Shown here: positions 7,014 to 52,300 of the stretch, in pieces
Layout of the letters: every line of letters begins with the position of its first letter
How positions within the stretch are numbered: the first letter of the stretch is position 1
Source: Klebsormidium nitens
Taxonomy: Eukaryota > Plantae > Klebsormidiophyceae
Assembly (NCBI GenBank): GCA_000708835.1
Contig: DF237128.1
Location: forward strand, 1 to 64,000
Reading direction: 5' to 3'
DNA length: 64,000 bases
The notes under the pieces: generated by a model
What the model was told of the DNA's origin: nothing
Database searches by the model: none
What the model saw: the letters and a program-made list of their open reading frames with translations, nothing else
Program-made: the position numbers and the translations under genes

Positions 7014-8208
7014 TCACATCTCATGCTCAACTTGTATCATCATCCTTGCTAATTCAGCATCGGAAATCTTCTCTATTGAGGCACAGTGGAGGAGGTCAGC
7101 AATCCGGGCCGCCAGCTGATGCTTGCACTGCAGCAACAGGGTTGACAGGAAGATGGAGTACGTACGACATGCATGGGTCAAATGAGGATCACCCTTAATG
7201 GAATCAGAGACATTGCAAAATAGAGAGCTCTAAGCATTCGCAGATTTGTGACGGACTCTTTCATTTCGGGTGGACTGTCTTTTGCAGCATTTCAACCAAG
7301 TTGCCTGTGCTCTTCCTTGAGACAGCAACAAGCTTGCTGGGAACTCACATGCAGCTGCTCCCCTTTGGAGACGACGTCATAGAAGAACGAATGACAAGAG
7401 CAGAAGTGGCTGGGAAAGCAGGTGTACTTCTCGCCTCCGTGCCCGGCCACCTGCACAGGCTTTGAATGGTGGATCCGAGGATTTAGTGGCATGACCATAC
7501 AAGACAAGTAGCACTTCATATCTATCCGCGGTCTAGCTCTGCAAACATTCTGAGACTGAGCACCAATCTTGTGATGAGAAGCTCAGGAGTGTGCAGCCAG
7601 GTCATGACCCAGTGCAATACCACCGCAAGACTGCACCTGAAACATAGAGCGCCCACTGCGTTCTCCCACAATGCTCCGCACCCCGCCAGTTGTGGCGATT
7701 TGCAAGGCCCGCTCTAGATTCTTCCCAAAGAAAAAGGACAGGCTGCACAGAGGATGTAGGTGTAGGGAGTGCCTCTCAGCAAAATGCAAGTGAGCATGCG
7801 TAGATCTTTGCAAGAGCAATAAATCTGAACGATAAGTTGGATTCTGGACTAAGGGTGGGGGCTAGTACGTCATTAACTGACAATGTACATTTCTAGAAGG
7901 CTGGAGATGGTGTCAACTCACGAAAGCAGCTGCTCGTCCGTTACTGCACAGAAAAGCGCAAGATCAGCGACAAAGAATGTGAACCATCTGCAAATTCGGT
8001 GCAATGTTATTGAAGCAGCAATTAGCCCAGGGCCCTCAAAGGCGCTCTTTCAAAACTGGTCGTGGTCTGCGAGCTGTTTGCACTGATGATTCTCCCACTT
8101 ACGAGAGGTTTGCTTGTCGTCTGGCGCTTGGTCAACGACGGGTGCATCCTGCTCCTTTGCAATCGCTGTGAAGAGCGCGTCCACAATCTGCGAAGCAGGA
8201 ACCTGCAT
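7014..8208 (-). CDS. ZSWIM7: SWIM zinc-finger protein ZSWIM7/SWS1 (Shu complex, homologous recombination)
   Basis: Spliced exons: MQVPASQIVDALFTAIAKEQD...(ATG 8208); mini-exon (V)TDEQLLS (~7923-7944); LSFFFGKNLERALQIATTGGVRSIVGERSGRSMFQ; VAGHGGEKYTCFPSHFCSCHSFFYDVVSKGEQLH; CKHQLAARIADLLHCASIEKISDAELARMMIQVEHEM*. The SWIM CxC...CKH motif is intact and splice sites are canonical. Confidence 0.92.
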
Positions 8209-8629
8209 CTCTGGGGTGCCAATGGAGGTGGTGGCGCAGTTTCGTATTCCAGGGGCTTTCAAGACCCTTGTATCTGAGCGACCAGTCTAGGGCCCATTCT
8301 AGCTCTGGTGGCTAATAAATTGTTGTTTTAATCTTCTGTCTTAGATCCTGCACCTCCGCTTCATGTCCCTATCCTATGCTCTGGAGGGCGACAGCACGTG
8401 AGCAGTGTGGAGATGGAAGTGTGTCCAATGCAATAGCAGTGCAAGGCCAATGCAGGTACGAAGACATTGCACACACTAAGGACGCAACCGTCAGCCAGGG
8501 GCATCCGAGGGGATCCCCCTGCGCCTTGGCAAGTGAGTTAAACTTCTGAGATCCAGACGCCTCGAAGTTGAAGTCGCAAATTGGCACATTGCAGACACTT
8601 TTCGGATCATTGGCGTACTCTCTCAGTAG

Positions 8630-11600
8630 CGCTCTGCGCCTCCTCATCTCAAACGTGTGGGCTACAGATCAGTCAATCAGCTTGAGCTGAAGGAAGCGCA
8701 GGCCAGATTAAAAAGAGAAGCTGGTATGAAATATTGATGCACTAGGCGCGTACATCTGCAGGAATGGCGCGCATATGAACATCTGTCAATTAGCCGAGGC
8801 GGGGTGATACGAATGGCTCTGAATGCAGAACACGTTAGTTGCTGCCTCTCTGTGCCAACCCCATTTACAGACACAAAGGTGCAGGAATGCGAGACCTTTC
8901 AAAAATGCTGTTCTCTGAGGATAGGCAAGCAACGCAGCAGTGGCGCATTTGTACACCCCCGACGGCTACGCCTCCCACAATTTGGTGAACCATTGCAACG
9001 GGTGTCTGGCAAGCTGAAGTGCCATGATTGCAGACACGTAAACAGCGCTCCCACCACTGCGGGACTGGTTGACAGCACTGGGGGAACAGGAGGGCAAAGT
9101 GCGGAGACCTCAAGTGGCCCCTATGGACCTTCCAACGACCTTTGGTTGACACAGGAGGTGGACCGCTTGACGAGTATGCAGGTGAGGAATCAAGGCATGG
9201 TGAGCAGTCCCCAGCCATGGAGTCCCTACTGATGTGCCCATGGTCAATTGGTGCTTTGTATGCAGTTATAATGTATGCACTTGCAGCGCTGTGGTTGCCA
9301 ATGTCGCTGCCGCCTCCTTGGGGTCACACAGCATTCCGTGTCTGTCCCTGAATGCAGCGGGCGCTTCCATCTGATGGCCTCCTTCTGACGCGGGGCAAGT
9401 GGAGCTGCGAAAGGCGCACCGCCAGCGACATTGTGCTGGTGGGAACCATGCAGTAAGGCCTGCTCCTTGTCTGGCTCGCCCAAATTGTGACAATCTCAAT
9501 GCACTGGCATCGGTGTACGGCTTCCTCGTGCATTTGTGCCTGCCACAAAGAGATGAGGCCCTCTGAGCCCCTCCTGTGTGGTATCTGCAGTTTCCACAAC
9601 CTCTCCGACCGGCGGGAACTCTTCATTCCTGAGCTGCGCGCAGAGGCAACCCTGCTGGCATCCGATAGCCTCCGGAATGTGATCACGCACACAGAGGTGA
9701 GGCCTGCACTTCAGTGGACCTGGCTGGGCAAGGGGAGGTGGAGCACTTGGTAGCGTGGCCACTCATTCTCGCCTAATTCTGCTGAGCCAAGAGAAGGTGG
9801 TTGCGTGCTGGTTGTTGGGCCTTCTGACACACGTCTGAGCCCGGCATAGGTGGTACCTCGACACACAGGCAAGTACGCAGTCTCTGCGCGGCCAGACGGC
9901 TACTGGCAAGCCTTCATCCTGGAGGCAGGCAAAACCACCAGCATTGAGGTAAGTATGCTCCGACATATGACTGGCTTGTTCTTGCTTTCATGTCTGAAAA
10001 CACATCAGCTAGTACGTTTTCTCTCAGGATCTTGTTGCTGTATAGATGGCCTCAGGACACACAAACAAGGCAGCGATTGCATTGAGCGGTGCTTTGCATC
10101 CCTTCTCGACCAGTCTCAGCCAATATTCATTGTGGCCTTGTGACACAACTTGCTTTCTCGACGTGTAACCTTGCTTTCAGGGCGGCGCATGATATGCACG
10201 AATCGTCTTCTGTACAGGCCCGCGTCTCAATACGTGCCCCTGACGAGCAAACCTCCCTAGACTTCCTCCAGGTAAGTAACTTTCCCCGTACCCAGTCCAT
10301 GCTTCTTGACTAGCTGATTCCTCCAGACACCTTGCTTTCGGGGCCTCCGTGGTCAGCTTGCCATGCTGGGCAAGGCCTGCCATCTCCCCGCCAACATTTC
10401 TTGCGTGGAGCTGCTGCAGGCAGTGTGGTTCCGCGTCCACTACATTGCCTACGGTCCCCACGGCCGCACCCCCCACACCCAGCACGCCATCCTGCCCCTC
10501 AGCTTCCCGCAAGCAGACACCGCCACACCGCAATGGAGAAAGTAAGTCTCCAGCGTTCCTGTGACACTACTCTAGTAGATTTCACCGTCGACCTCTTAGT
10601 TTGAACACCCCTCGTTTTCATGTTTGCCCCATGGCTACAGTCTTGGTCCAACATGGTCAGGCTGCATCAGGCACCCTTGTCCTCCCCCTGCCTTCCTCCT
10701 GCTTCTGTCCTGACGTGCGTCCCTTTTCCGCCCAGAGCGGGCCCGCGCGCGCAGGTGCTGCCCATTCGCACGCATCTGCTCTCCCATCTCGACGACCCTC
10801 TCGCCATCTTCAACCGGTGAGCTCCGATCCTCAGGCTTTCTCTGGTGAAGGTAACCCCGGTCTTGAGTGGAATGGGGGGGCGTCTGTCGTCTGATCAATT
10901 GCTTCTCTCGCAATGCACTCGGAAATTTGCCTGACTACTAACAAGAAATGGGTCGGCGTAAAGTACTTTCTCGAAGTAGTTCTGAGAAACGGAAGGACAA
11001 GATATGGTCAGGCAGATTGCTGTCAGGGCTTGCCTTGCGCTGCTGCTTGTCCAGCTGGTGCGGTGCTGCGTGCCTGCAGGTACGTGCTGCCGCACGCGCG
11101 GCCAGGCGACATCTTGGCGCTCGGGGAGACGCCGCTCGCCATCATGCAAGGTCAGCCACTACGGGTGCTTACATCTAGTTGTCTCCTCATACAAGCAAGC
11201 GCAAAAGCGAGCCGCTGGTGAGTACTGCTCCTCCAAATTTGATGCCGGTCTGTAGCACGGCTGGCCCCCTGCGCATTGCGACCTCTGCCTAGCCTGGATG
11301 CTTACTCCGCTGGGTGTGCGCCCCTGGCGCCAGTGCAGGCCGGTTCCGGCACCCCAGCAGTCTCCGCCTGAGCTGGGTGGCCCTGTGGGCGTGCCGCCTC
11401 TTCCACCCCACCTCCAGCCTGGCCACCGCCTGCGGCATGCAGGCAAGCCGCACCGCTCACTGTTGCCGCCACGATCGGCTGCGGTTCGCCTAGCACCCGA
11501 TCGCCGACGAGGCGCCTGCCTGGCACTTGACGGCCCAACTTTGTCGCTTGTGCCCTCGAGATGGCTACTGGCGTGCGTGCTACTCCTCCTTGTGCTGACG

Positions 11601-13099
11601 TCATTCGATACCCCCAGCCGTGCGGTCTGCAGCCTCTTAATCTCGTTTTCGATGAGCCACGTTTGTCGTCCCACGTGACTTCGCAGGCCCTGGTGGACAT
11701 TGTCGGGCAGCTGCGGGTAGTAGCGGCCGCCCTGCTGGCCGGAGTCGCGCGGTGAGTACCTAAACCGGGCTCTCAGCGCTGCCTCTTGCCTGTCACTTGC
11801 GCCATTGAGTGAGCAAGGCACCTAGAGCTGTTCGCGGCTGCCGTTCTCTGCTCCACCCAGAAGTGCATCCACCACGGCATTTGGTTGGTACGAGAATCAT
11901 TTTGGAACGCCCTTTTTGGCTGGTCGCTGCCTCGGCAGCTCACGTGCTCGTTGGGTGTGCAGGCTGCTGCGCATCCGCGGCATGTTCTACAACCTGGCGG
12001 GAGAGCAGGTACGGACCACGAGCCTGCGCTGGACAGGCGGCCGAGCCGCTGGCCCAAAATTCACAGCGATCCTACTCGGATCAAGTCGTCCTTGCGGCAC
12101 TGTTCTGTGTGTCCCCCATACTCGTAAAGTCCCTGCTGACGGGCCGGTCCGTGGGGTATCATTTTGCTACAGCAGGGGCCCCGTTTCTTTTGCGTCTGAG
12201 TGAAAGTGGGAGCCCCGCACGTCCGGTCGCTGCGGCGTCATGTGCACTGCTGCCCCGTTGCTCGTGTCGCTGCAGGCCCGCCTGATTGATGACGTCAGCG
12301 GCACCCTGCCCCCGTACGACCAGTTCATCTGCCTGGGCCCGGTAAGCAGCCGTCTCCCGCCCGGCACTACGGCGGCCCCCCGGTAGGGCGCGCCATGCTG
12401 GGGTAAAGCTTGTCTGCTCTCGCTTCCGCTCTCGTTCGTGCTCTCTTGCTCGCTTGGATTCGCTGCGACGCGGGCGCCGTCGTGGTGAACCGATGCGAGC
12501 ACTCGCGCTGGTGGCAGGTGCGGCCGCAGCAGACGGTGGACGCGCTGCGCGAGCGGACGGGGGTCGAGGCGGCCATTGTGGACGTGAACGACCTGCGCAA
12601 GTGCCAGGTCCTCGCGGTAAGGGCGCCGCGCAAACGGACCCGCCTGCGCAAGACGCTCTGAAAGGTCCTGACTTGACTGAGCGAAAGGGTGTCCGATCGA
12701 CATGTATGTCTGTGAATTTTCTCCCTTGATTGGGTTTCGCTGGCTTCAAACATCGTGCCGGAAATTGTGAAGCGGGGGAGAACGCCTGTCTGCAGGCGTC
12801 CCGTGGAGTTGATCCTCAAGCGTTGGCGGCTGCACTGTTGGACAATCCAGCAGGTAAGAAGGACTACGCTGGTGTGCTCTGATCATTCTGCTGGCTGAGT
12901 AGTCTACGCTGAGCCCTCTTCCTAACTGCTCTTGTCCTCGCACCTTTGCCACGTCTCTTTTTGTCACGCGCATTTGCTTGGCCTCCTGTGCTGCAGCTCA
13001 CTGCTCATGCAGCTTGGATGGTGACACTAGGCCTCTTCATGTACAGGCAATGCGGACGAGCAGACACCTTTGGTGCTGGTCCGTATTGAGCCTCAATAA
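8630..13099 (+). CDS. Cyanobacterial-type F420-0:gamma-glutamyl ligase (CofE)-like protein with an N-terminal beta-rich domain of unknown function; true start upstream/unresolved (~8376-8630)
   Basis: At least 13 exons splice in frame: ...DLWLTQEVDRLTSMQ|RALPSDGLLLTRGKWSCERRTASDIVLVGTM|HFHNLSDRRELFIPELRAEATLLASDSLRNVITHTE|VVPRHTGKYAVSARPDGYWQAFILEAGKTTSIE|ARVSIRAPDEQTSLDFLQ|AVWFRVHYIAYGPHGRTPHTQHAILPLSFPQADTATPQWRK|AGPRAQVLPIRTHLLSHLDDPLAIFNR|YVLPHARPGDILALGETPLAIMQG|RFRHPSSLRLSWVALWACRLFHPTSSLATACGMQ|ALVDIVGQLRVVAAALLAGVAR|LLRIRGMFYNLAGEQ|ARLIDDVSGTLPPYDQFICLGP|VRPQQTVDALRERTGVEAAIVDVNDLRKCQVLA|ASRGVDPQALAAALLDNPAG|NADEQTPLVLVRIEPQ* (stop 13097-13099). This is colinear with recalled cyanobacterial proteins annotated as F420-0:gamma-glutamyl ligase. 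Confidence 0.88.
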
Positions 13100-14169
13100 G
13101 CAGGGGACTTGGGCTTGGGAACCAACTACCGTGGCTTCCACTTTCCCAAGAATCTTGTCCATCGTTGTCTGAAGCGCGGCAAATTTCGCTGTCAGTGTCT
13201 ATGCACCAAGCCTGATTCGAAGTGGCCGTTCAACTGTAAACCTGCCAATCACGGCTCAGAGTATGCCGGGGCAACAGACTGCGGAGTAAACCTGCTTTGT
13301 CTACTAACCTTCTTTTCATACTTTTCCGTCGGTTGGGCTAGAGATGATGGGCCTGGGTTTATGTATTTCTTGTTTTTGAAGCTTCGTAGCGGACCGCGTC
13401 TCCATGTTCCGTCCAAACGTTCCATTGTCGGGAATAATATCCATGCGTCCATGATTCTTTCGAGTGTCATGTCAGTACTTATATGAATTTGCGGCCGGGG
13501 CCAAGGCTCCGCGGTACAACCGATCGTCGTTACGGTGCTCCAATTGATGAGAGCCTGAGCAATTATATCAGGTATATAGTGTAGGAGCTAGACATATAAC
13601 ATGTGCGGAGCTCCGACAAGCGCATGTGCGGCTGCATTCAAGCGCCTCACGGTCACGCGCGGCCCTTCAATGTTTACGCATGGAGAAGACTCTCTCTTTA
13701 ATTATACACATTCGTAACCAGTCGAATCGATTGCATAGGTGCCGACCGTCTGATTCTTTGCACTAGGTTTCATGCGAAGCATTCGCAGGCGGCGCTGGCT
13801 GGTGCTAGCAACTGTCACTACCGTATTGCAGCAATTAGCAAAAGCTTTGTTTACAACAAAGGCTCACCAAGTCAACTTCAGACTGGCTGGCTGCAGTTCT
13901 AGTCCAACATGTGCATGCAGATTCAGCCTCCGATTCGTTCAAACATGCCAGGCCCATGAATCCAATCACAGAAAGCATCAATAACTGGCGGCACGTGGTC
14001 AACGATGTAGGTTAGCAAGCCATATGTGCAGTACCTTTTGAAGGCGGCATGGTGTTGTAGATCCCAACTAAGAATCCCTGCAAGCCAACTTTGTGAGTGG
14101 TTCGGAACAATACCTCGCACGTTGGGACTGCTTTACAAACCAGCTATAGCTAGCCAAACTCTTGAACAC

Positions 14170-17006
14170 CTACTTGTTCTTTTCAGCTGGCAACGGTCGA
14201 TTGAAACCTCCTGAAAAGGACAAAGGACAATAAAACCATCAGCAAAAGCAGAATATATAAGGAGTCTTGTTCACATGAACAATTCCTCTGCTGTTTTAAC
14301 ACTTCCAGTCAACGGGACCTCATTCGTTTTTCAAAGGAAAGAGCAGAGGCCGGACACAATCAATCCGCAAATGGTCGCATGTTCCGTTACCGAGTAAAAC
14401 ACCCAGACGAAAGGCTGTGGTTACGTGCACCCGACTCGAAAACGCACGCTAGAATCAAGCCAATGAGAGGCACTGATTATACTGCCCTACGAACCATTGG
14501 CATATAGGCTTCCATAACCCACGACATACGAACACGGGGATCGATTCAAATATCGATGCTTGATATTTGAGGGTGGTCTCGAAAAGCGAAAAGCAAGGAA
14601 CAATTAACAAGCATCCTCATACACTCGAAGCAGCTAACCGCCCTGAAGCAGCTGAACCCGAATGCTGTTGTGGAAGCAAAGCCGGGTCCCACGTACACCG
14701 TAAAGTCAAGTTACCAACAACACAGAAGTGCAAAGTAACGCTTCGTCCATCAAGAGCGGAGTAGCACCGCAGATACGGGACCTTGGAGCCTCCGATCAGC
14801 TGGCACCAACTAGAAATGGATTCGTGCCTAGTACCCTTGAAGATCCGTGAGAAGAGCTGCATACGCCGAGCTCGATATTTCCCGTGAGAACGTGGAGAAG
14901 TTGCTGCTTTTAGCTGCCACACGCCCTCGATGCATCGAGAGTATGGCGCAGAGAGGCAGCGTGCATTAGTAAGAGACTGCTCACCTTTCCGGTTCATAAA
15001 CTGTCGGGCCTGCCGCTTCGTTGTCACTTTTACCGCACTATGGTTGGCCCCTTCGACATACTTCCCCTGCAAGTTTCAGACGGGGATAGAAGCAGGTAGA
15101 TTCTCCTTCAAACCTCTCCAAACGAGATATCCATCAAGCAGTCCAAGCTGCTTTTTTGAATGAACAAGGTCCATAGTGACTGACTGTCGAGGAACTGCAA
15201 AATGCTTGGTGAAAAACACTCTCTATCACGTTTCCTGACATAGGTCGCAATAGCGATATGTGCTCGTGGCGATGGTCAGACTGCGCCTCCCGTGTAAGTT
15301 GGAAAATGCTTCTGTCCCGACAATGCAAAGTATCTTGCTCGATTCAGGACAGCCGCCAAAGGAAGGTAATACCCCGATTCTCAGACGCCGTTTGCACTTG
15401 CACAGAAGTCCCGGCATCCAAACGGACGAAGCTAACTGGCCAAACAGCATATCCTGCCTGATAATGTAACAAGCGCACCACGTACACTTTATGTAGACTC
15501 TTGCAAGTCATCTCCAAGAACCTTTCTCTCCACAGAAGCGGATTCGCTCCGCTCACCTTGGTGGTATCGAAGCCCCCCGGAAAGCCCATGAGCGCCATCA
15601 TCTGCGCCTCTTCCTGCAGTCTCCGCTCGACCTCTGCTTCTTGCGCGCTCTGCTCCCGAACCTCCTCGATAAAGCTCGCCACCTTGTCCCCCCCCCCAAT
15701 CTCAAACACGTCCTGAAAGTCGTACTCTTCCTCAGCCTGCGGCCTTTCCGTTTTCTTCCCCTTCGGCCCCTCCCCTCCCGCGCGCCTCTCCTCCTCCCCC
15801 CGCCGCCTCTCTCGCTCTTTCCGCTCTCGTTCTACGCGTTCCCTCTCCTCCGCCTCCCGCTCCAACCGATCCTGCTCTTTCTCTTCCCTCGTCTTTTTCA
15901 GGTCGACCGAGACACTCCTCCGCCGTGGTGGGGGCGAGTCTGAGCGCGATCGGGCGCGACGCTCGGGAGTTCGTGAGCGCCTTTTTCGTCCTGGAGATGC
16001 ATCCCGCCGTGGTCGGCGGTCCTTGTCCCGGTCAGTGTCCCGGTCCCTCCGACTGCTTCGCTCCTTCTCACGGTCTCTGCCGCGACCGTCATGGTCACGT
16101 ATCCGGTCTGCACAAAAATTACTGTCATTCAGCAGCTGTTCAAAGACCATCAAGTGCAGCCCTTCTGGATAAGGTTGGTGGTAAGTGATGTGTTTCCATT
16201 GGGTCTATCGCCACTAAGACCTTCTCTTAAGGTAAGCAACAGACCACGAAAGAGTGCAAGCAGAGACGGACATGTGAGAAGCTTGCGTCAGGAGTCCAGA
16301 TTTATCGCTTAACCCAGGAGTCCAGATTTATCGCTTAACCTCACTGAAGCACCCAACCCACGCAAACAAACTATGTCGTGCTCAAGTCTGGTGGCCTAGG
16401 ATCTCACAAACGCAATTTTTGGAACACTGGGAGCAATATAAATGAAGCCTGTCGGTCAGCTGCGGGTGCATTTTTCATAGTCCACCTGCAAATGCAGAAT
16501 CCCATGGGTGAACTGTTTCCGCTAAACAAGCCCCGGGTAATCAATCAAACAGAAAGCAGATGCACACTGCTTTGCTTGAGCGCTTGTTTCATAAGATTCA
16601 TCAACCACAGGAGGAATCGAGACCAGATCAGCCAATCGCACCTGGTTCATGTGAGTTTTTAAATAATAACCTGCACAATTTCACCACCACCTTTGTTCAT
16701 CACCACCATTGAACAAAAGAATCCCAATGAACGATCTCATCCAATGCTTACTCCCTCTCCTAAGACACTCTTGCATGGACCACATAATCAGCCCTCCCAA
16801 ACGTTGATCGGCAGGACCTCAGTCAACCCCAGTTTTTTCAGAGCTATCAAGCGTCCTCACAGTCTGTTAAACCATGCCAATCAAGCTTGTGGCTGCCTTG
16901 CGCTGCAACATGGCAAACCCTAATGCCAGCCGACACCATCAAAATCAAGCCAATAATTCAACTCACCTCTCCTAGGAGAGCGGGACCTTGAGCGGGAACG
17001 AGCCAT
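14170..17006 (-). CDS. SNRNP27: U4/U6.U5 tri-snRNP 27-kDa protein
   Basis: Exons: 16967-17006 MARSRSRSRSPRR(D); ~15555-16107 RS/RD/RE-rich region ending MMALMGFPGGFDTTK; ~14984-15068 GKYVEGANHSAVKVTTKRQARQFMNRK; 14170-14210 GGFNRPLPAEKNK*. The C-terminal GFDTTK...RQ.MNR.GGFNRPL motif is diagnostic. Confidence 0.95.
16289..16340. repeat. Perfect 26-bp tandem duplication in SNRNP27 intron 1
   Basis: caggagtccagatttatcgcttaacc repeated twice, directly adjacent. Confidence 0.95.
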
Positions 17007-18424: not shown

Positions 18425-21400
18425 ATGAGACAAGAGGTCACGGAATGGGCCAATGATGATGTCGCCACGGAGCAATTGGGGATGCATGAGGGGCGCGAAA
18501 GTCCAAACATTAGGGCCGGGAGGACTGGGGCTTCAGAGTCAGGCATACAGCTGCTCCTCTTGAGTGCACGACGGGGTCTCAAAAGGAAAGGGTAAGCAGA
18601 ATTTTATCCCCACTCCTTTTGGCACATGCCCTATGGCTGAGCATTCGTACCTTGTTTGCATGCTTCCTGCATGCCGGTGCGGCTGGTGCAGATGATCATC
18701 ATGCTACCAAGCAGAATGCAAGAGCGGGCTCAGACTGATGCTCTTTTTGGTATTGTCTGATCATTACGTTGCATTCTTTTCACTCATCTTCTCACCAAGC
18801 AGAGAGAAAGATGGGGTGCAAAACGAGAGGTTTGAATCCCCCGTGATCATATCTTGCGAATCAGCCCCAGCATTGGTTTCATTCCAGCAACACTTTTTCA
18901 GCTCACTTGACTTCCGTGCTGCTCCTTTCTTAGGGAGCTGGAGGTGTTCAACTGCGATTCCCCCGAAGCTGACCCCCTTTTGGAGCTCGAGAGTTTTAGC
19001 TGGAACAAGGCTCTAGGCCTGCGATTGCGCAGCACCAAGTCGGGCAAGCTCCTGATGACGCTGGTGCCGATTCAGCGGCCAACGGGCTCCCTGCCCGTGG
19101 ACCTGCCCCAGGAGTGCCGCCTGCCAGGGATCGACAGCGAACAGCTGGAAAACACCTGGGAGCTTTGCAGGTGAGACTCTCAGTCTCTTGCCTTCCAAGA
19201 GATCTACCTGCACCTCAAATGCATGAGTGACTGCCATAGTATCGTCTGTCTCCCAAACTTCGAGTTTGGGGGAGTGCCCTCATGTGATGTTGTTTTGATG
19301 GTTTTCTTGGCTCTTGAATCCGGTGTCTTCTTTTGCCCTGTCCCTGTCTTTGTTACAAAGTTGATGGTGTTTACAGAAGATTTACTTCACTCTGAGAGTT
19401 GCTGCTGCTGTTTAGACTCCATGACCTGGGTGCCACCTCTCCAGTCCGGAAAATTGCGATTTTTTGCTCTGCGCAACTTCTGATATTTTTCTGGAGGCTA
19501 GGCGTGCCTTGGTAAATAGATCTGATGTCATGCACAGGGCTGGCCTCTTACAGCTGTCTGCATCAAATCTACCGCAATCTAAGTTTGTCTTTGAATGTCT
19601 CAGGTTGCTACCGTGCTAGGCCCTTAGCTTCTTCTGCTGAAAGAGTCCTTAGAATGAAAAGGTTTCTTTTCACCTTTTTACACTTCCGACCATTTTGGAT
19701 TGGCCCCTTCTCTTCAATTGCATGAGAGTAAGGAACCAAAGGTGCCAGTACTCCTAACTTGCAGGCAGGCAACAGCGTCCACACCCCACTGCCCAAGTTT
19801 TCTTGTCCGAGAATATAAGACAAACCTCAGGGTTTTTGGCCTTTGTCTTTCTCTCTGTCCGCTTGCCCTTTCCCTCGGAAGTGATAACGGTTCCCGGGCC
19901 CAGCACATCGCTGCATCATTGATGCGGGTCATCTTTGATAGCATTCAGAGTGCCTTCGAATCAAGCCTTCCCACCCTCTGACGAGTTCCTTAACCACTAA
20001 CTATCAGCCCCTCCCTTTTGGACAGAGTTTTTGACGCTTTTACCCCACCCTGATCATCTAAGAAGAAGCTTCACACTTTCTCTTCTTTCCCCCTTCTCGT
20101 CCGGCGCACTTGCCCATGCCTTAACTTACGCTTCGTGTCTTGCCAGAGTCTATGCCGACGGCCGGGTTGTGGCCTCCCTCCGCTGCTCCCCCCAGCCGAA
20201 CTGCCCCCCCCGCTCCTGCTGGCATGACTTAGGTCACCCGCTGAGGCTTCGGCGGCGGCCTTGCCGCCAGAGCTTCCGTCTCTGGGTCGCTGCTGCGGGG
20301 GCCGTCGAAGCTGCCTGCTCTCGGTGCGCCAGCTTCAAAACGGACGACTCCAGCGGCCACGAGCTGACATGGGCGCTGAGCCGGGGTCTGGGCGTGTCGG
20401 TGACGCTGCGCGCTTCTGAAGATGCGCCGCGCAACGTGAGAGAAGAACTCGGAAGCCGCAAGGAGTCGGGTGTTCGGAAGGACGTGGCGGAGTATTGGGA
20501 AGAGGTTGCAAGTGCGCGGAAACGGTGGGAGACGGGGCAGGCGAACGAGAATAGGGAGACTGGGGGGGACGGGGAGGCAGTGCGGGCAGCTGATGGGGGA
20601 GCATCTTCAACGGAGACTGACAAAGAAACTGAGGTCAAAGGCGTGGTTGAGCGGGATCAGGACACTTTACCGAGTAGGACAGAACATACCAGAGAGCGGA
20701 ATGGTGTGGACTCAAGAGTCAGCGATGCGGAGCCGTCAGGGAGAGGCCTGGGAGAGAGCATGGGGATAGAGTCAAAGAATGGCGGCACTGGCCCATCGGG
20801 AAGGGACCCGGAGGTTTCCGGAGCGGTTGCACGTGCAGACGCATGGGGGCACGTTCCTCAGCGGTCACTAGAGAGCGTCGACGAGTTTTTTGAGTGCGAG
20901 AGCAGGCGGTACTCCGAGAGCGGCTCGGAAGCGAGCGTTCGCGACATGGATGTAGGGGCCGGACGGCCCTCGTCAAAGAGCCTGAGCGGCATTGGGGGCC
21001 AGGGCTGGACTGCGAGACCCGAATCGGCTAACGGGCGTCAGCCGCACTCAACCGGAGCGTCGCATGATTGTAGCAGGAGCGTCGAGTGTTTTCGAGGGGG
21101 CGTTTTCCGAGAAGAGGGACAGTCAGGGAGCAGCAAGACTTGCCAGACAGACGCGCATCAAGCGGATGCCACCTGTCGGAGGGGAGACGAGGTTGCAGAG
21201 CCGCCTTTGAGGAGATTGGGAATACTGGAGTCATTCCTCTCGAGTTCGATGGGGAGCCGTCAGGAGTCTGGGATGAACGATCTCGAGCGACCGCTGCTCC
21301 CTTACCGGTCGTCGGGCCTGCAATACGACCCTGCTTCGGATATTCGGGCGTTGCATCCCCAGGGTTCGTTAGTTCCCTCGGGGTTCAACACGTCAGCAAT

Positions 21401-21635
21401 GGTGCCGTTGTCGGCAGAGCTGGCACAGGCCCCGGTTGGCAAAACGGAGATAGTTTTCAGTGACGTAAGCGGCGGCGCGCGGTCGGGGGAGTCCGTGATT
21501 GCGTCAGCAAGAAGTTCGGGTTTTGCTTGTAGGAAACGGCTCAATCTGAGAGTGTCAGCGACGTGCCCCGCTGATACCTTGGCACTGACCATGCTCGCAC
21601 ATTATCTGTGGGAGGTGGTGGACGTAGGGAGCTAG
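18425..21635 (+). CDS. Protein of unknown function with a long disordered S/G/E/R-rich insert; possible split Tubby-C/LURP-like fold
   Basis: Phase-compatible exons ~18425-18591 (...RRGLKRKG|gtaagc), 18934-19170 (ELEVFNCDSPEADPLLELESFSWNKALGLRLRSTKSGKLLMTLVP...WELCR) and 20147-21635 (VYADGRVVASLRC...LNLRVSATCPADTLALTMLAHYLWEVVDVGS*). The start ATG is uncertain and the fold guess is weak. Confidence 0.7.
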
Positions 21636-33726: not shown

Positions 33727-42070
<8,344 letters not shown>

Positions 42071-49300: not shown

Positions 49301-52300
49301 CGAGAGCAGGCCCATGATACGGCCAGTGGAACAGTCAATGGTCCGACAGCCTCCGGCAGCTGCCCCACCTGTTCCTTGAGGGCCTTGAGCTCGGAGTAAT
49401 GAGTCGTAGCGACTGTGAGCGCGGCAGTTCCCGCCAGGTGCTTCAGCAGCGCAGTCGCCAGCGCGGCGCCCTCAGACGGGTCAGTGCCCCCGCCTGCCTC
49501 GTCCAGAAGCACCAGCGAGGACGGGCCACACGCCTGGAGGGCAGTACGAAATCGATTTAAAAAAGCAATCACGACAAGACAGCGACTTGCGTACAATGCC
49601 TCTCCGACTCGATAATGATCACATAAGAGTAGCAGTGCTTTCAAGCCAATCGTCATGCTGCTGGCCAAAATTCGAGATAAGCGACCAGACACTGAGAGGC
49701 GGCGTTTTCGTAATCCTGGCAATCATGGCGAAATTGGAAAGAAAGACGTCGATGAAGTAAGCCCCGTCCCCACGTACTGACCTGCAGGATCCTGGTGAGC
49801 CTGCGCACGTGGCCGCTGAAGGTGGACAGGCTCTGCTGCAGGCTCTGCTCGTCGCCCACGTCCGCCAGCACCGCGTCGAACCACGGCACCACCGGCGCGC
49901 CCTGCGCCGGCACAAACAGGCCCGCGCGCACCATCAGCGCGGCCATGCCCAGCGTTTTCAGGGTCGCCGTCTTGCCCCCCGTGTTCGGGCCCGTGATGGC
50001 GACCACCCGAACGTGGGGGTCCACCCGGATGTCGATCGGCACGGGTAACCTCTCCGCCGATCCGTGCTCCGTCCGTGGATCCTGCTTCTTGTTCAGGGGC
50101 CCAATGGCTGCGGCCAGGAGCAGGGGGTGCCTCATTTGCTGAATGTCCAGCCACGTGGAGGTCTCGTCCCCTCTTCCGCTGCTGCTAGCCTCGGTATCTA
50201 CGCTCGGTGGGGCAGCGCTGAAGGTGGGCCGCGTGCCGTGGAGCCAGGCGGCATGGGCGGCCCGCGCAACGGCCAGGTCGAGGGCCGTGATGCGCTCCAG
50301 GAGGAGCAACAGTCCGGCCGCACGATGAGCCACCTGCAGGGCGGGATCTACGGACTTAGCACGAGGCTGACAACTGTGCGAGGAGGAGAAACGGGGTTGT
50401 TTGGAATGATCCATGATTCAGGTCACACCGTTATGCACAGCAAGCTAAGAACCCATCGTTCATCTTATCCAGAACCATGCAGCGATGGCGCTGTATTTGG
50501 AACATATTTTGCAGGAAATGCTTACCTGGCTGCTGAGCTGCTTGAGGATGCGCGTCTCCTCCTCTGCCTCCTGCCCGGATAGCTCCATCTCCCGGTTGTT
50601 CAGGGCGATTGCTTCCTCTGGCTCGACATACACTGTGACACCCGTGTTGCTCTGGTCCAGCGTGATGCCACCTGCACACGAAAGAGGCACTTCTGACTGC
50701 GGACAATCTGGAAAACGAAGTGGACACATCGGCAGAGTCGACTCTGATCCAGGTGCACGTGCCTGGAAGTGGATGCTGTCAGGGAAGGTGCTCCTTCTTA
50801 TCACCTCTCGGATTCCCCAACACAGAAGCAGAACAACTATGAGAGATGAATCCAACTGAAATACTGGTGTTAGTTCAGAGACAAAGTGATACTCCCAGAC
50901 CCCATGCACCAAACAAACAGGGCGAGCGAAGTGGCGCCGTACCTCGGATGTCCCCCCGTCGTGCTGCCTTGACGGCCACGCACAGCCTGCCCCTCCTGGC
51001 CACCACCATGCCCTGCTCTGCCGCGCCGCTGGCCTCCAGCTGCGCCGCCAGCGTCCCCAGCAGCTGCTGCAACGCTCGCATGTTGTCCCGCCGCTGCGAC
51101 CGGATGGAAGCCAGGGCAGCACTCGCCGTGTCCAGGATGAGGGGGGGCCTGAGGATGAGGGACGAGAGCCACTTACAAAGGGCGAAAGAGCGCAGCGGCC
51201 TTAGAACTTTATGAGTGCCCCCAGACCCAACAGTCCCTCAGCCCTGAAATTGACTACGATGAAAGTATCCAACTCATGCAGTCATCTCCAAAAAGATGAA
51301 CATGCATGATTTATTGGACTCACTCTGCAGAGAGGCAGCGCCTGATGTCTTGCGCCAGTTGCAGGTCCACTGTGACTGGCTCCAGGATGGTCAGCAGCGG
51401 GTCCAGGGCCCCTGGCGCAGCCTTTGCAGCAGCAGTGCTCGCGGCCACCAGCCCCCTCTGCACGACAATAAGCTGAACATCAACGGCGCTAGCCGTGATG
51501 CGCCCCGTCGCCCATTCCTGACAAGTTCTCTGCTGTGCTCAAGGTCTGTGCCATCCGTAACAAGGAACAACTGTGCCCTGAGAATAAAACCTGGCACTGC
51601 TAGTTAATGGTACTCTCCAGCCAACGGACCCATCACTGCGCACCTGCAGCCTGTCTGCGGCCTCCAGGCTGGCCCCGACGTCGGCCAGCTCCGCGATCTG
51701 GCAGCACTGCCCCGCGGCCGCCTTCTGCACCACCTTGCGGATGTCCCTCACCCCCTCAAACGTGAGGGTGCAGTGACGCGCCGCCTCCGTCTCTGCGAGC
51801 AGCTGCACGCTCTCTGCTTGGGTGCGGCCAATGCGGAGCTGGCCAGCCTGCGCCATGGCCACTGCAATGGGGGTGGAGGCAAACTCAGCAACCTGCAGTC
51901 GCCACAACCATACGCAGTGTCGGTCAAGCTTCGCAACTCACAGGCTGGCATCGGGGCCGGAAGACTGCAGCATTGCTGATGGAAGATGCGCGTTCACTCT
52001 TGAGCTTTGTCAGGTTGACCTCAATCAAAAGGCTGAACTTCAGCTCGGAGCTGCATCAACAGCAAGACTCCTATCTGCCAAAGCGAGGGCAGGGCAGGGT
52101 GTGTTAGGAGCAGGCTTCACTGTCCTCATGTTTCTCTTTCAAAAAGAGTGACTATGGCGCACCTGCTTGCACAAGGCCGGCCACTCCAACAAGCGCAAGG
52201 CTTCCTCCTGAACGCCTGCACCGGGTTCCTCGACCTCCGGCTCAATGCTAGGAGCGTCACCTTCACTGTCATCCTCAGTGCTAGAGTCACCTTCGTCAAC

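Follow-up and report, generated by a model that had tools for sequence, protein, structure and literature searches.

The DNA analysed here, which we call the window, is a stretch of 64,000 nucleotides (positions 1 to 64,000, forward strand, of contig DF237128.1, assembly GCA_000708835.1) from the streptophyte alga Klebsormidium nitens, and the subject of this work is a gene with 14 introns that occupies positions 8813-13099 on the + strand. A preliminary description made from the letters of the sequence had presented the locus as an intron-rich nuclear gene of the green lineage, encoding a cyanobacterial-type F420-0:gamma-glutamyl ligase (CofE)-like enzyme. The first half of that statement is correct: the gene is real, nuclear and expressed, and it corresponds to the public gene KFL_001790040 of K. 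nitens, whose 433-residue product is named 'hypothetical protein' by NCBI and 'F420-0:Gamma-glutamyl ligase' by UniRef. The second half requires revision. We consider the product to be, with fair probability, a plastid amide-bond ligase of CofE fold and cyanobacterial descent that acts on a substrate other than F420, which amounts to the fallback offered in the same description, namely some other GTP-dependent amide-ligation pathway, possibly in the plastid.

The gene model was obtained by reading positions 8000-13800, translating all three forward frames and joining the stop-free pieces at AG/GT boundaries, with a GC donor in one case. Its 15 coding exons (at least 13 had been proposed) splice into a single open frame, a 1,488-nt coding sequence in which 495 codons, free of internal stops, precede TAA, and of the 14 introns 13 are GT-AG and one is GC-AG. 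Every one of the 14 junctions was found in transcriptome contigs from four public RNA runs, belonging to four studies, that were placed on positions 8500-13400. Thirteen of the joints in RNA are exactly those predicted, while the fourteenth set the acceptor of exon 6 at 10419/10420, so that this exon starts at 10420 and not at an earlier AG, with 31 codons fewer and the frame kept. The features of the gene are as follows.

8608..8812, + strand: 5' leader of exon 1, with four short upstream open reading frames (uORFs); contigs of two runs start at 8608 and 8614 and are unspliced to 9175.
8726-8807, + strand: the uORFs of the leader, with ATG at 8726, 8737, 8764 and 8775, each of 2-10 codons.
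8813..9181, + strand: coding exon 1, with a presumed transit peptide and the start of the conserved region (about residue 104); donor junction in RNA contigs.
9358-9452, 9591-9696, 9850-9948, 10218-10271, + strand: coding exons 2-5, predicted N-terminal beta-sandwich domain (AlphaFold strands); junctions in RNA of four runs.
10420-10541, 10736-10816, + strand: coding exons 6-7, predicted end of the beta-sandwich, linker and first CofE-like strand; RNA joins 10271-10420 and 10541-10736.
11080-11150, 11339-11442, 11687-11751, 11963-12008, + strand: coding exons 8-11, predicted CofE-fold domain; all junctions in RNA contigs.
11443..11686, + strand: intron 9, the GC-AG intron, with donor GCAAGC; the 244-base skip is seen in three of the four runs.
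12276-12341, 12518-12616, 12796-12853, 13047-13099 (with TAA), + strand: coding exons 12-15, predicted CofE-fold domain; all junctions in RNA contigs.
13100..13400, + strand: 3' untranslated region of at least about 240-300 nt; contigs extend past the last exon to 13275-13400.

The RNA data also correct the 5' end. Coding had been proposed to begin at 8630, in an exon followed by an intron, but the contigs show no splicing between about 8608 and 9181; position 8630 is noncoding, the supposed exon and intron are parts of one long first exon, and the first in-frame ATG past a stop at 8735-8737 is that at 8813. The four motifs quoted in the preliminary description are all present in the translation, with GDILALGETP in exon 8, IDDVSGTLPPYDQ in exon 12, AAIVDVNDL in exon 13, and the motif NPAG followed by NADEQTPLVLVR spanning the exon 14/15 junction of the spliced protein. 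The last 421 of the 433 public residues are identical to our spliced model. The first 12 are supplied in the public model by a small exon at 8363-8398 that is spliced into the middle of exon 1, and neither this joint nor a loose end of it was found in the contigs of the four RNA runs. As such, the annotated N-terminus of KFL_001790040 is probably wrong, and a start at ATG 8813 adds 74 residues. Two side observations can be made on the transcript. The four uORFs that precede the main ATG may reflect translational control, or the true transcription start may lie further downstream than the contigs suggest. Separately, low-depth contigs from the same runs cover whole introns (9920-10245, 11415-11712 and 11980-12301), and represent either unspliced pre-mRNA or a carry-over of genomic DNA in the libraries.

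Pfam searches with single exons gave no match because the pieces are too short, and 40 genuine residues of exon 6 retrieved a family of full-length proteins from a representative protein library. The Marchantia member, used in turn as a query, brought up the public K. nitens protein. The family is already annotated by automatic pipelines, and we found no published work on it in searches that included locus tags, plants and thylakoids. For the searches reported below, the public K. nitens protein (identical over 421 residues) took the place of the spliced 495-residue protein. AlphaFold, given a 45-sequence alignment, produced a model (predicted local distance difference test 85.5, predicted template modelling score 0.84) with two domains, a family-specific N-terminal beta-sandwich and a C-terminal domain of about 210 residues with the fold of CofE. 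Residues 224-432 of the model superpose on residues 2-222 of the Archaeoglobus fulgidus CofE (2PHN/7ULD) with a VIA Z of 14.2 and a root-mean-square deviation of 3.1 A (181 residues aligned, 22% identity), and CofE is also the best Foldseek match (E 5e-6, probability 1.00). The remaining VIA rows have Z of at most 8.9 and all fall on the beta-sandwich (residues ~60-207), whose likeness to the adaptin ear/GAE, ApaG and LEA_2 folds (Z 8-9) is generic and for which no named relatives were found.

The C-terminal half is thus CofE-like by predicted fold, as had been claimed, but by sequence it is only weakly so. The K. nitens C-domain scores 12.1 bits (E 0.14) against PF01996 (F420_ligase), below the gathering cut-off of 25; the Marchantia orthologue scores 12.6 bits, and full-length orthologues in general remain sub-threshold at 11-19 bits. 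With the C-domain alone, 42 of 45 family members match PF01996 at E<=1, the lowest E being 6.6e-8, and seven members from cyanobacteria pass the cut-off with 25.4-29.4 bits, mostly over profile positions 2-63, which makes membership at the Pfam level marginal. NCBIfam holds no family model for the plant or cyanobacterial members; its cofE equivalog models (TIGR01916, NF009809) leave the K. nitens protein unmatched, and the best cyanobacterial C-domain reaches 16.9 bits against a TIGR01916 cut-off of 180.65. Family profiles, whether of the whole protein or of the C-domain, found no match among PDB sequences, and a single-sequence phmmer search of the same set returned three CofE sequences as its only matches, at E 0.4. 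A CofE-family match, which the preliminary description had proposed as a check, is therefore present in structure and across the orthologues at a permissive threshold, and lacking for the K. nitens protein at the Pfam and equivalog cut-offs.

The family alignment has 56 invariant columns, many of them Asp, Glu, Asn, His or Cys, with the invariant motifs DD..G..PPYD, VDVND and NPAGN..EQTP; the group motifs PTSSLATAC and GD[IV]..[IL]GE[TS]P are both in the window protein. Mean column identity is 62% in the C-domain vs 40% over the whole protein, and the beta-sandwich is much less conserved. When compared with the Archaeoglobus enzyme, an N-terminal strand and a GD(I/V)....(S/T).....GR motif align, and in one phmmer alignment the CofE stretch GDVLVVCSTVISKAEGR appears in the family as GD(I/V)..(L/I)(G/A)ETP.A.MQGR. 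Within the CofE motif GD..vvSTvvSKaeGR, that one alignment keeps G33-D34, T41 and G48-R49, whereas S40 is replaced by an invariant Glu and K45 by Leu or Ile; S40 and K45 are residues that we take to contact the nucleotide. The family further differs from CofE in its added beta-sandwich, which is preceded by a membrane anchor or a presumed transit peptide. The nearest structures to the C-domain in the ESM Atlas are short PF01996 'CofE-like' proteins of 216-257 aa (template modelling (TM) score 0.92-0.93, and this both ways for a 216-aa cluster), which occur in Bacillota, Actinomycetota and others, including fusions to TPR and asparagine-synthase domains. These share the length of the C-domain and its lack of a C-terminal hairpin, but they have no beta-sandwich and belong to other phyla, and the comparison with them is by structure and automatic cluster names.

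The spliced model is collinear with eight full-length homologues, to which it is 42-58% identical across 370-420 residues, a similarity far beyond chance. Overall, full-length orthologues (42-60% identity) extend to several hundred cyanobacterial species and, among eukaryotes, to liverworts (Marchantia, MPTK1_2g07820; Riccia; Calypogeia), mosses (Ceratodon, Sphagnum), lycophytes (Diphasiastrum, Selaginella), ferns (Adiantum, Ceratopteris), a conifer (Cryptomeria), streptophyte algae (Mesotaenium, Closterium, Klebsormidium, Chlorokybus, Mesostigma) and prasinophytes (Micromonas pusilla CCMP1545, Pyramimonas). Two further orthologue groups are eukaryotic by their neighbours, which are a linker histone and TMEM208 in one and Sec20 and clathrin in the other. 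Ranked match lists that reached fern and conifer proteins at 54-61% identity contained no orthologue from angiosperms or core chlorophytes. The breadth of this retention across green plants agrees with the earlier suggestion that the gene is under constraint. Cyanobacterial and plant proteins are 50-55% identical over about 370 residues, and the cyanobacterial proteins that carry the name 'F420-0:Gamma-glutamyl ligase' (Planktothrix, Leptolyngbya, Trichodesmium) are true orthologues with the same two domains and invariant motifs. They differ in having no introns and in having an N-terminal transmembrane helix where the eukaryotic members have an extension. In most orthologues examined this extension is rich in Ser, Ala and Arg and poor in acidic residues (that of K. 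nitens is S/T/R-rich), a composition that would suit a plastid transit peptide. Among the eukaryotic sequences, three Selaginella moellendorffii models at two loci (P0021, P0173, P0174) are 251-308 residues long and end inside the CofE-like domain, and may be decaying copies or poor gene models; Riccia sorocarpa P0025 carries a precomputed UBP zinc-finger Pfam match and a ubiquitinyl-hydrolase name, which hint at a model that has run into an adjacent gene.

Kinship with cyanobacteria, also part of the preliminary description, is borne out. A genome scan returned at least 549 confirmed prokaryotic loci, and the 80 that were kept are all from cyanobacteria or metagenome-assembled genomes. In a 56-row tree computed by maximum likelihood (quick search under LG+C20; unrooted, and midpoint-rooted for drawing only), the 34 cyanobacterial rows, a sample biased to the best matches, form one clan with a Shimodaira-Hasegawa-like approximate likelihood ratio test (SH-aLRT) support of 99, and every eukaryotic row lies outside it. 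Branching among the streptophytes agrees with the species tree, and the positions of three long branches (Micromonas, a TARA picoeukaryote and one ENA sequence) are insecure. The sequences therefore support a cyanobacterial origin, and would fit a single early acquisition from a cyanobacterium, after which the gene was passed down vertically, with losses along the way. The simplest route would be the plastid endosymbiont, although the tree fits a later single transfer from a cyanobacterium equally well.

On the analogy of CofE/FbiB and of FolC2 of Chlamydia, it is reasonable to postulate that the protein would be a ligase that works as a dimer and depends on metal and nucleotide. A carboxylate of the substrate would be activated to an acyl phosphate, and an amide bond would then be formed with an amino acid or amine, probably at the surface of a plastid membrane and probably upon a substrate other than F420-0. 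The structure and expression of the gene, the modelled fold, the spread of the orthologues and the kinship with cyanobacteria are results of the analysis, whereas the plastid location, the ligase chemistry and a substrate other than F420 are inferences. We favor this plastid amide-bond ligase as the probable reading, and three points weigh against it. First, the N-terminus of the K. nitens protein, which bears upon the plastid location, is uncertain: the public and RNA-based models differ there, and the leader contains uORFs. Second, given the changes at S40 and K45, nucleotide binding may differ from that of CofE or be lost. Third, the absence from angiosperms and core chlorophytes is read from ranked match lists, which are good evidence of it but not exhaustive.

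Gene neighbourhoods offer a further source of information on function, and we examined 81 cyanobacterial loci. A gene for a 400-residue GNAT protein lies directly downstream on the same strand in 69 of them, followed by RuvX (64/81), DUF1292/DUF3727 (59/81) and YceG/MltG (58/81). On the other side, cruF is present in 49 loci, in 48 of which it lies upstream on the opposite strand, mostly within 0.3-0.9 kb, and cruG is present in 43; both pass the NCBIfam equivalog cut-offs. Many of the cyanobacterial orthologues, unlike the K. nitens gene, thus sit between cruF-cruG and the GNAT-RuvX-DUF1292-MltG block, and the conserved order reads cruG and cruF (divergent), the CofE-like gene, GNAT, RuvX, DUF1292/DUF3727, YceG/MltG (e.g. 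locus L001, 5461-13318, and loci L004-L084). DNA resembling that of Geitlerinema PCC 7407 has the full arrangement. The GNAT protein is 61-70% identical across distant cyanobacteria, and the best 120 matches in a search with it are all cyanobacterial. We considered it as an operon partner and rejected the association as strong evidence, as in Nostoc PCC 7524 the GNAT-RuvX-DUF1292 genes persist with no CofE-like gene beside them; the neighbours are therefore better regarded as inherited order and as weak evidence of function. In eukaryotes, a compact, intron-poor picoeukaryote contig (L089/L090, 6001-10943), the one with Sec20 and clathrin, has the orthologue adjoining an AA_kinase gene and a PAP2 phosphatase gene, with a VanY-type D-Ala-D-Ala carboxypeptidase gene 2.6 kb off.

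These neighbourhoods bear on the first of the alternatives, in which the protein would be an amide ligase or accessory enzyme of the peptidoglycan or envelope of cyanobacteria and plastids. It would form amide bonds in a step, so far undescribed, that cyanobacteria have in common with plastids of non-flowering green plants, and that most angiosperms and core chlorophytes would have given up together with the associated biology. The gene lies 2-6 kb upstream of mltG/yceG in the 58 loci mentioned, and the VanY-type and PAP2 genes of the picoeukaryote contig point in the same direction, but the block is partly kept in Nostoc apart from the CofE-like gene, and eukaryotic gene order seldom mirrors function. 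The phylogenetic range is similarly two-sided. That of the full plastid peptidoglycan toolkit is alike (PMC10784329, PMC4815162), taking in Micromonas pusilla and other prasinophytes, streptophyte algae, bryophytes, ferns and Cupressaceae, and most angiosperms and core chlorophytes lack both the gene and the full toolkit; however, a like distribution in prasinophytes is seen for other ancestral genes, phytochrome among them, and a full toolkit is reported for Citrus and Asparagus, whereas the ranked lists gave no angiosperm match. This proposal is in our estimation unlikely, though it deserves to be kept in view. We know of no step in peptidoglycan synthesis that requires such an enzyme.

It is also unlikely that the protein is non-catalytic or regulatory and uses the CofE fold as, for example, a ligand-binding or scaffold protein at the membrane. 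The replacement of S40 by Glu and of K45 by Leu or Ile speaks for this reading, as do the resemblance of the beta-sandwich to protein-interaction modules (adaptin ear/GAE) and the fusion of related short CofE-like domains to TPR repeats in other bacteria. On the other hand, the abundance of Asp, Glu, Asn, His and Cys among the 56 invariant columns is a pattern typical of an active site, and the C-domain is far better conserved than the beta-sandwich, which also speaks against this reading.

A polyglutamylase of folate or another cofactor is less likely again. Cyanobacteria and plants already possess FolC/FPGS, folate genes occur in none of the 81 cyanobacterial neighbourhoods, and a core folate step would hardly be expected to disappear from angiosperms. 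The precedent is nonetheless instructive: CT611 (FolC2) of Chlamydia trachomatis, a COG1478/CofE homologue with folylpolyglutamate synthase activity in an organism with no other cof genes, complements E. coli folC (PMC1971073), and the CofE fold therefore is not confined to F420 and does not dictate it. FolC2 resembles the K. nitens family in its CofE superfamily membership and non-F420 substrate, and differs from it in that the family has no folate gene context; the likeness is drawn from the published description.

The name given by the databases, and by the preliminary description, would make the protein a true gamma-glutamyl ligase of F420-0 or another deazaflavin, with cyanobacteria and non-flowering plants deriving an F420-like cofactor from the precursor FO. 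In addition to that name, CofE is the sole solved fold matched by the C-domain, and FO-using photolyases do occur in cyanobacteria and unicellular algae (PMC8498797). However, FO in the absence of CofC and CofD offers no carboxylate for ligation, and no cof genes were seen among the called genes of the cyanobacterial neighbourhoods inspected. The same review mentions cyanobacteria and algae only in connection with FO as a photolyase antenna and finds no evidence of F420 synthesis in eukaryotes (PMC8498797). In CofE, R234 of the dimer partner stacks upon the deazaflavin, and a domain-swapped hairpin, on which R234 presumably lies, makes critical contacts with F420 (PMC10861534). The modelled K. 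nitens protein stops one residue past the position aligned to CofE residue 222 of ~250, and is therefore about 30 residues shorter at the C-terminus, with no counterpart of the deazaflavin-contacting segment that bears R234. Further, its structure would lie nearer to the short non-canonical PF01996 proteins than to the CofE-CofC fusion cluster (TM 0.71 in the ESM Atlas), the cofE equivalog is unmatched by the K. nitens protein and remote even from the best cyanobacterial one, and the GD...SK..GR residues are changed. An F420 role is accordingly unlikely, to a degree that we would call very improbable for the ligase as named.

A partnership with cruF and cruG, the genes of the carotenoid glycoside myxoxanthophyll, is more improbable still. 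The equivalog-level identity of these genes and the position of cruF in 48 of the 81 loci speak for such a link, but about 30 loci have neither cruF nor cruG in flanking DNA (short for some), and an order common to related cyanobacteria can be inherited with no functional connection. To our knowledge, green plants do not make myxol glycosides, yet they keep the gene.

Last, the surroundings of the gene in the window should be considered. Other open reading frames match UCH (37439-38617, + strand), SNRNP27 (15347-16153, - strand, just below the Pfam cut-off) and MutS domain V (49656-50414, - strand), and these neighbours make the surroundings eukaryotic; a 534-aa open reading frame at 20031-21632 has no Pfam match. 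Bacterial contamination or mis-assembly, the possibility raised in the preliminary description, is refuted by these neighbours, by 14 spliceosomal introns whose spliced forms are present in RNA contigs of four studies, and by orthologues in many plant genomes that track the species tree.

What emerges is a well-conserved, enzyme-like protein handed from cyanobacteria to the green lineage, where it is found from prasinophytes to conifers and where it has been retained for something like a billion years. That it is apparently lacking in flowering plants and in the green algae commonly used as models may explain why it seems not to have been studied, and the automatic F420-ligase name is misleading, as its carriers are not known to make F420. 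It would belong with the many plastid proteins that derive from cyanobacteria and are uncharacterised, and no sign of exotic biology is seen in it. Marchantia, Physcomitrium and transformable cyanobacteria open the protein to direct tests; were its substrate identified, the CofE fold would gain a reaction, and a role of the plastid that angiosperms have lost could come to light.

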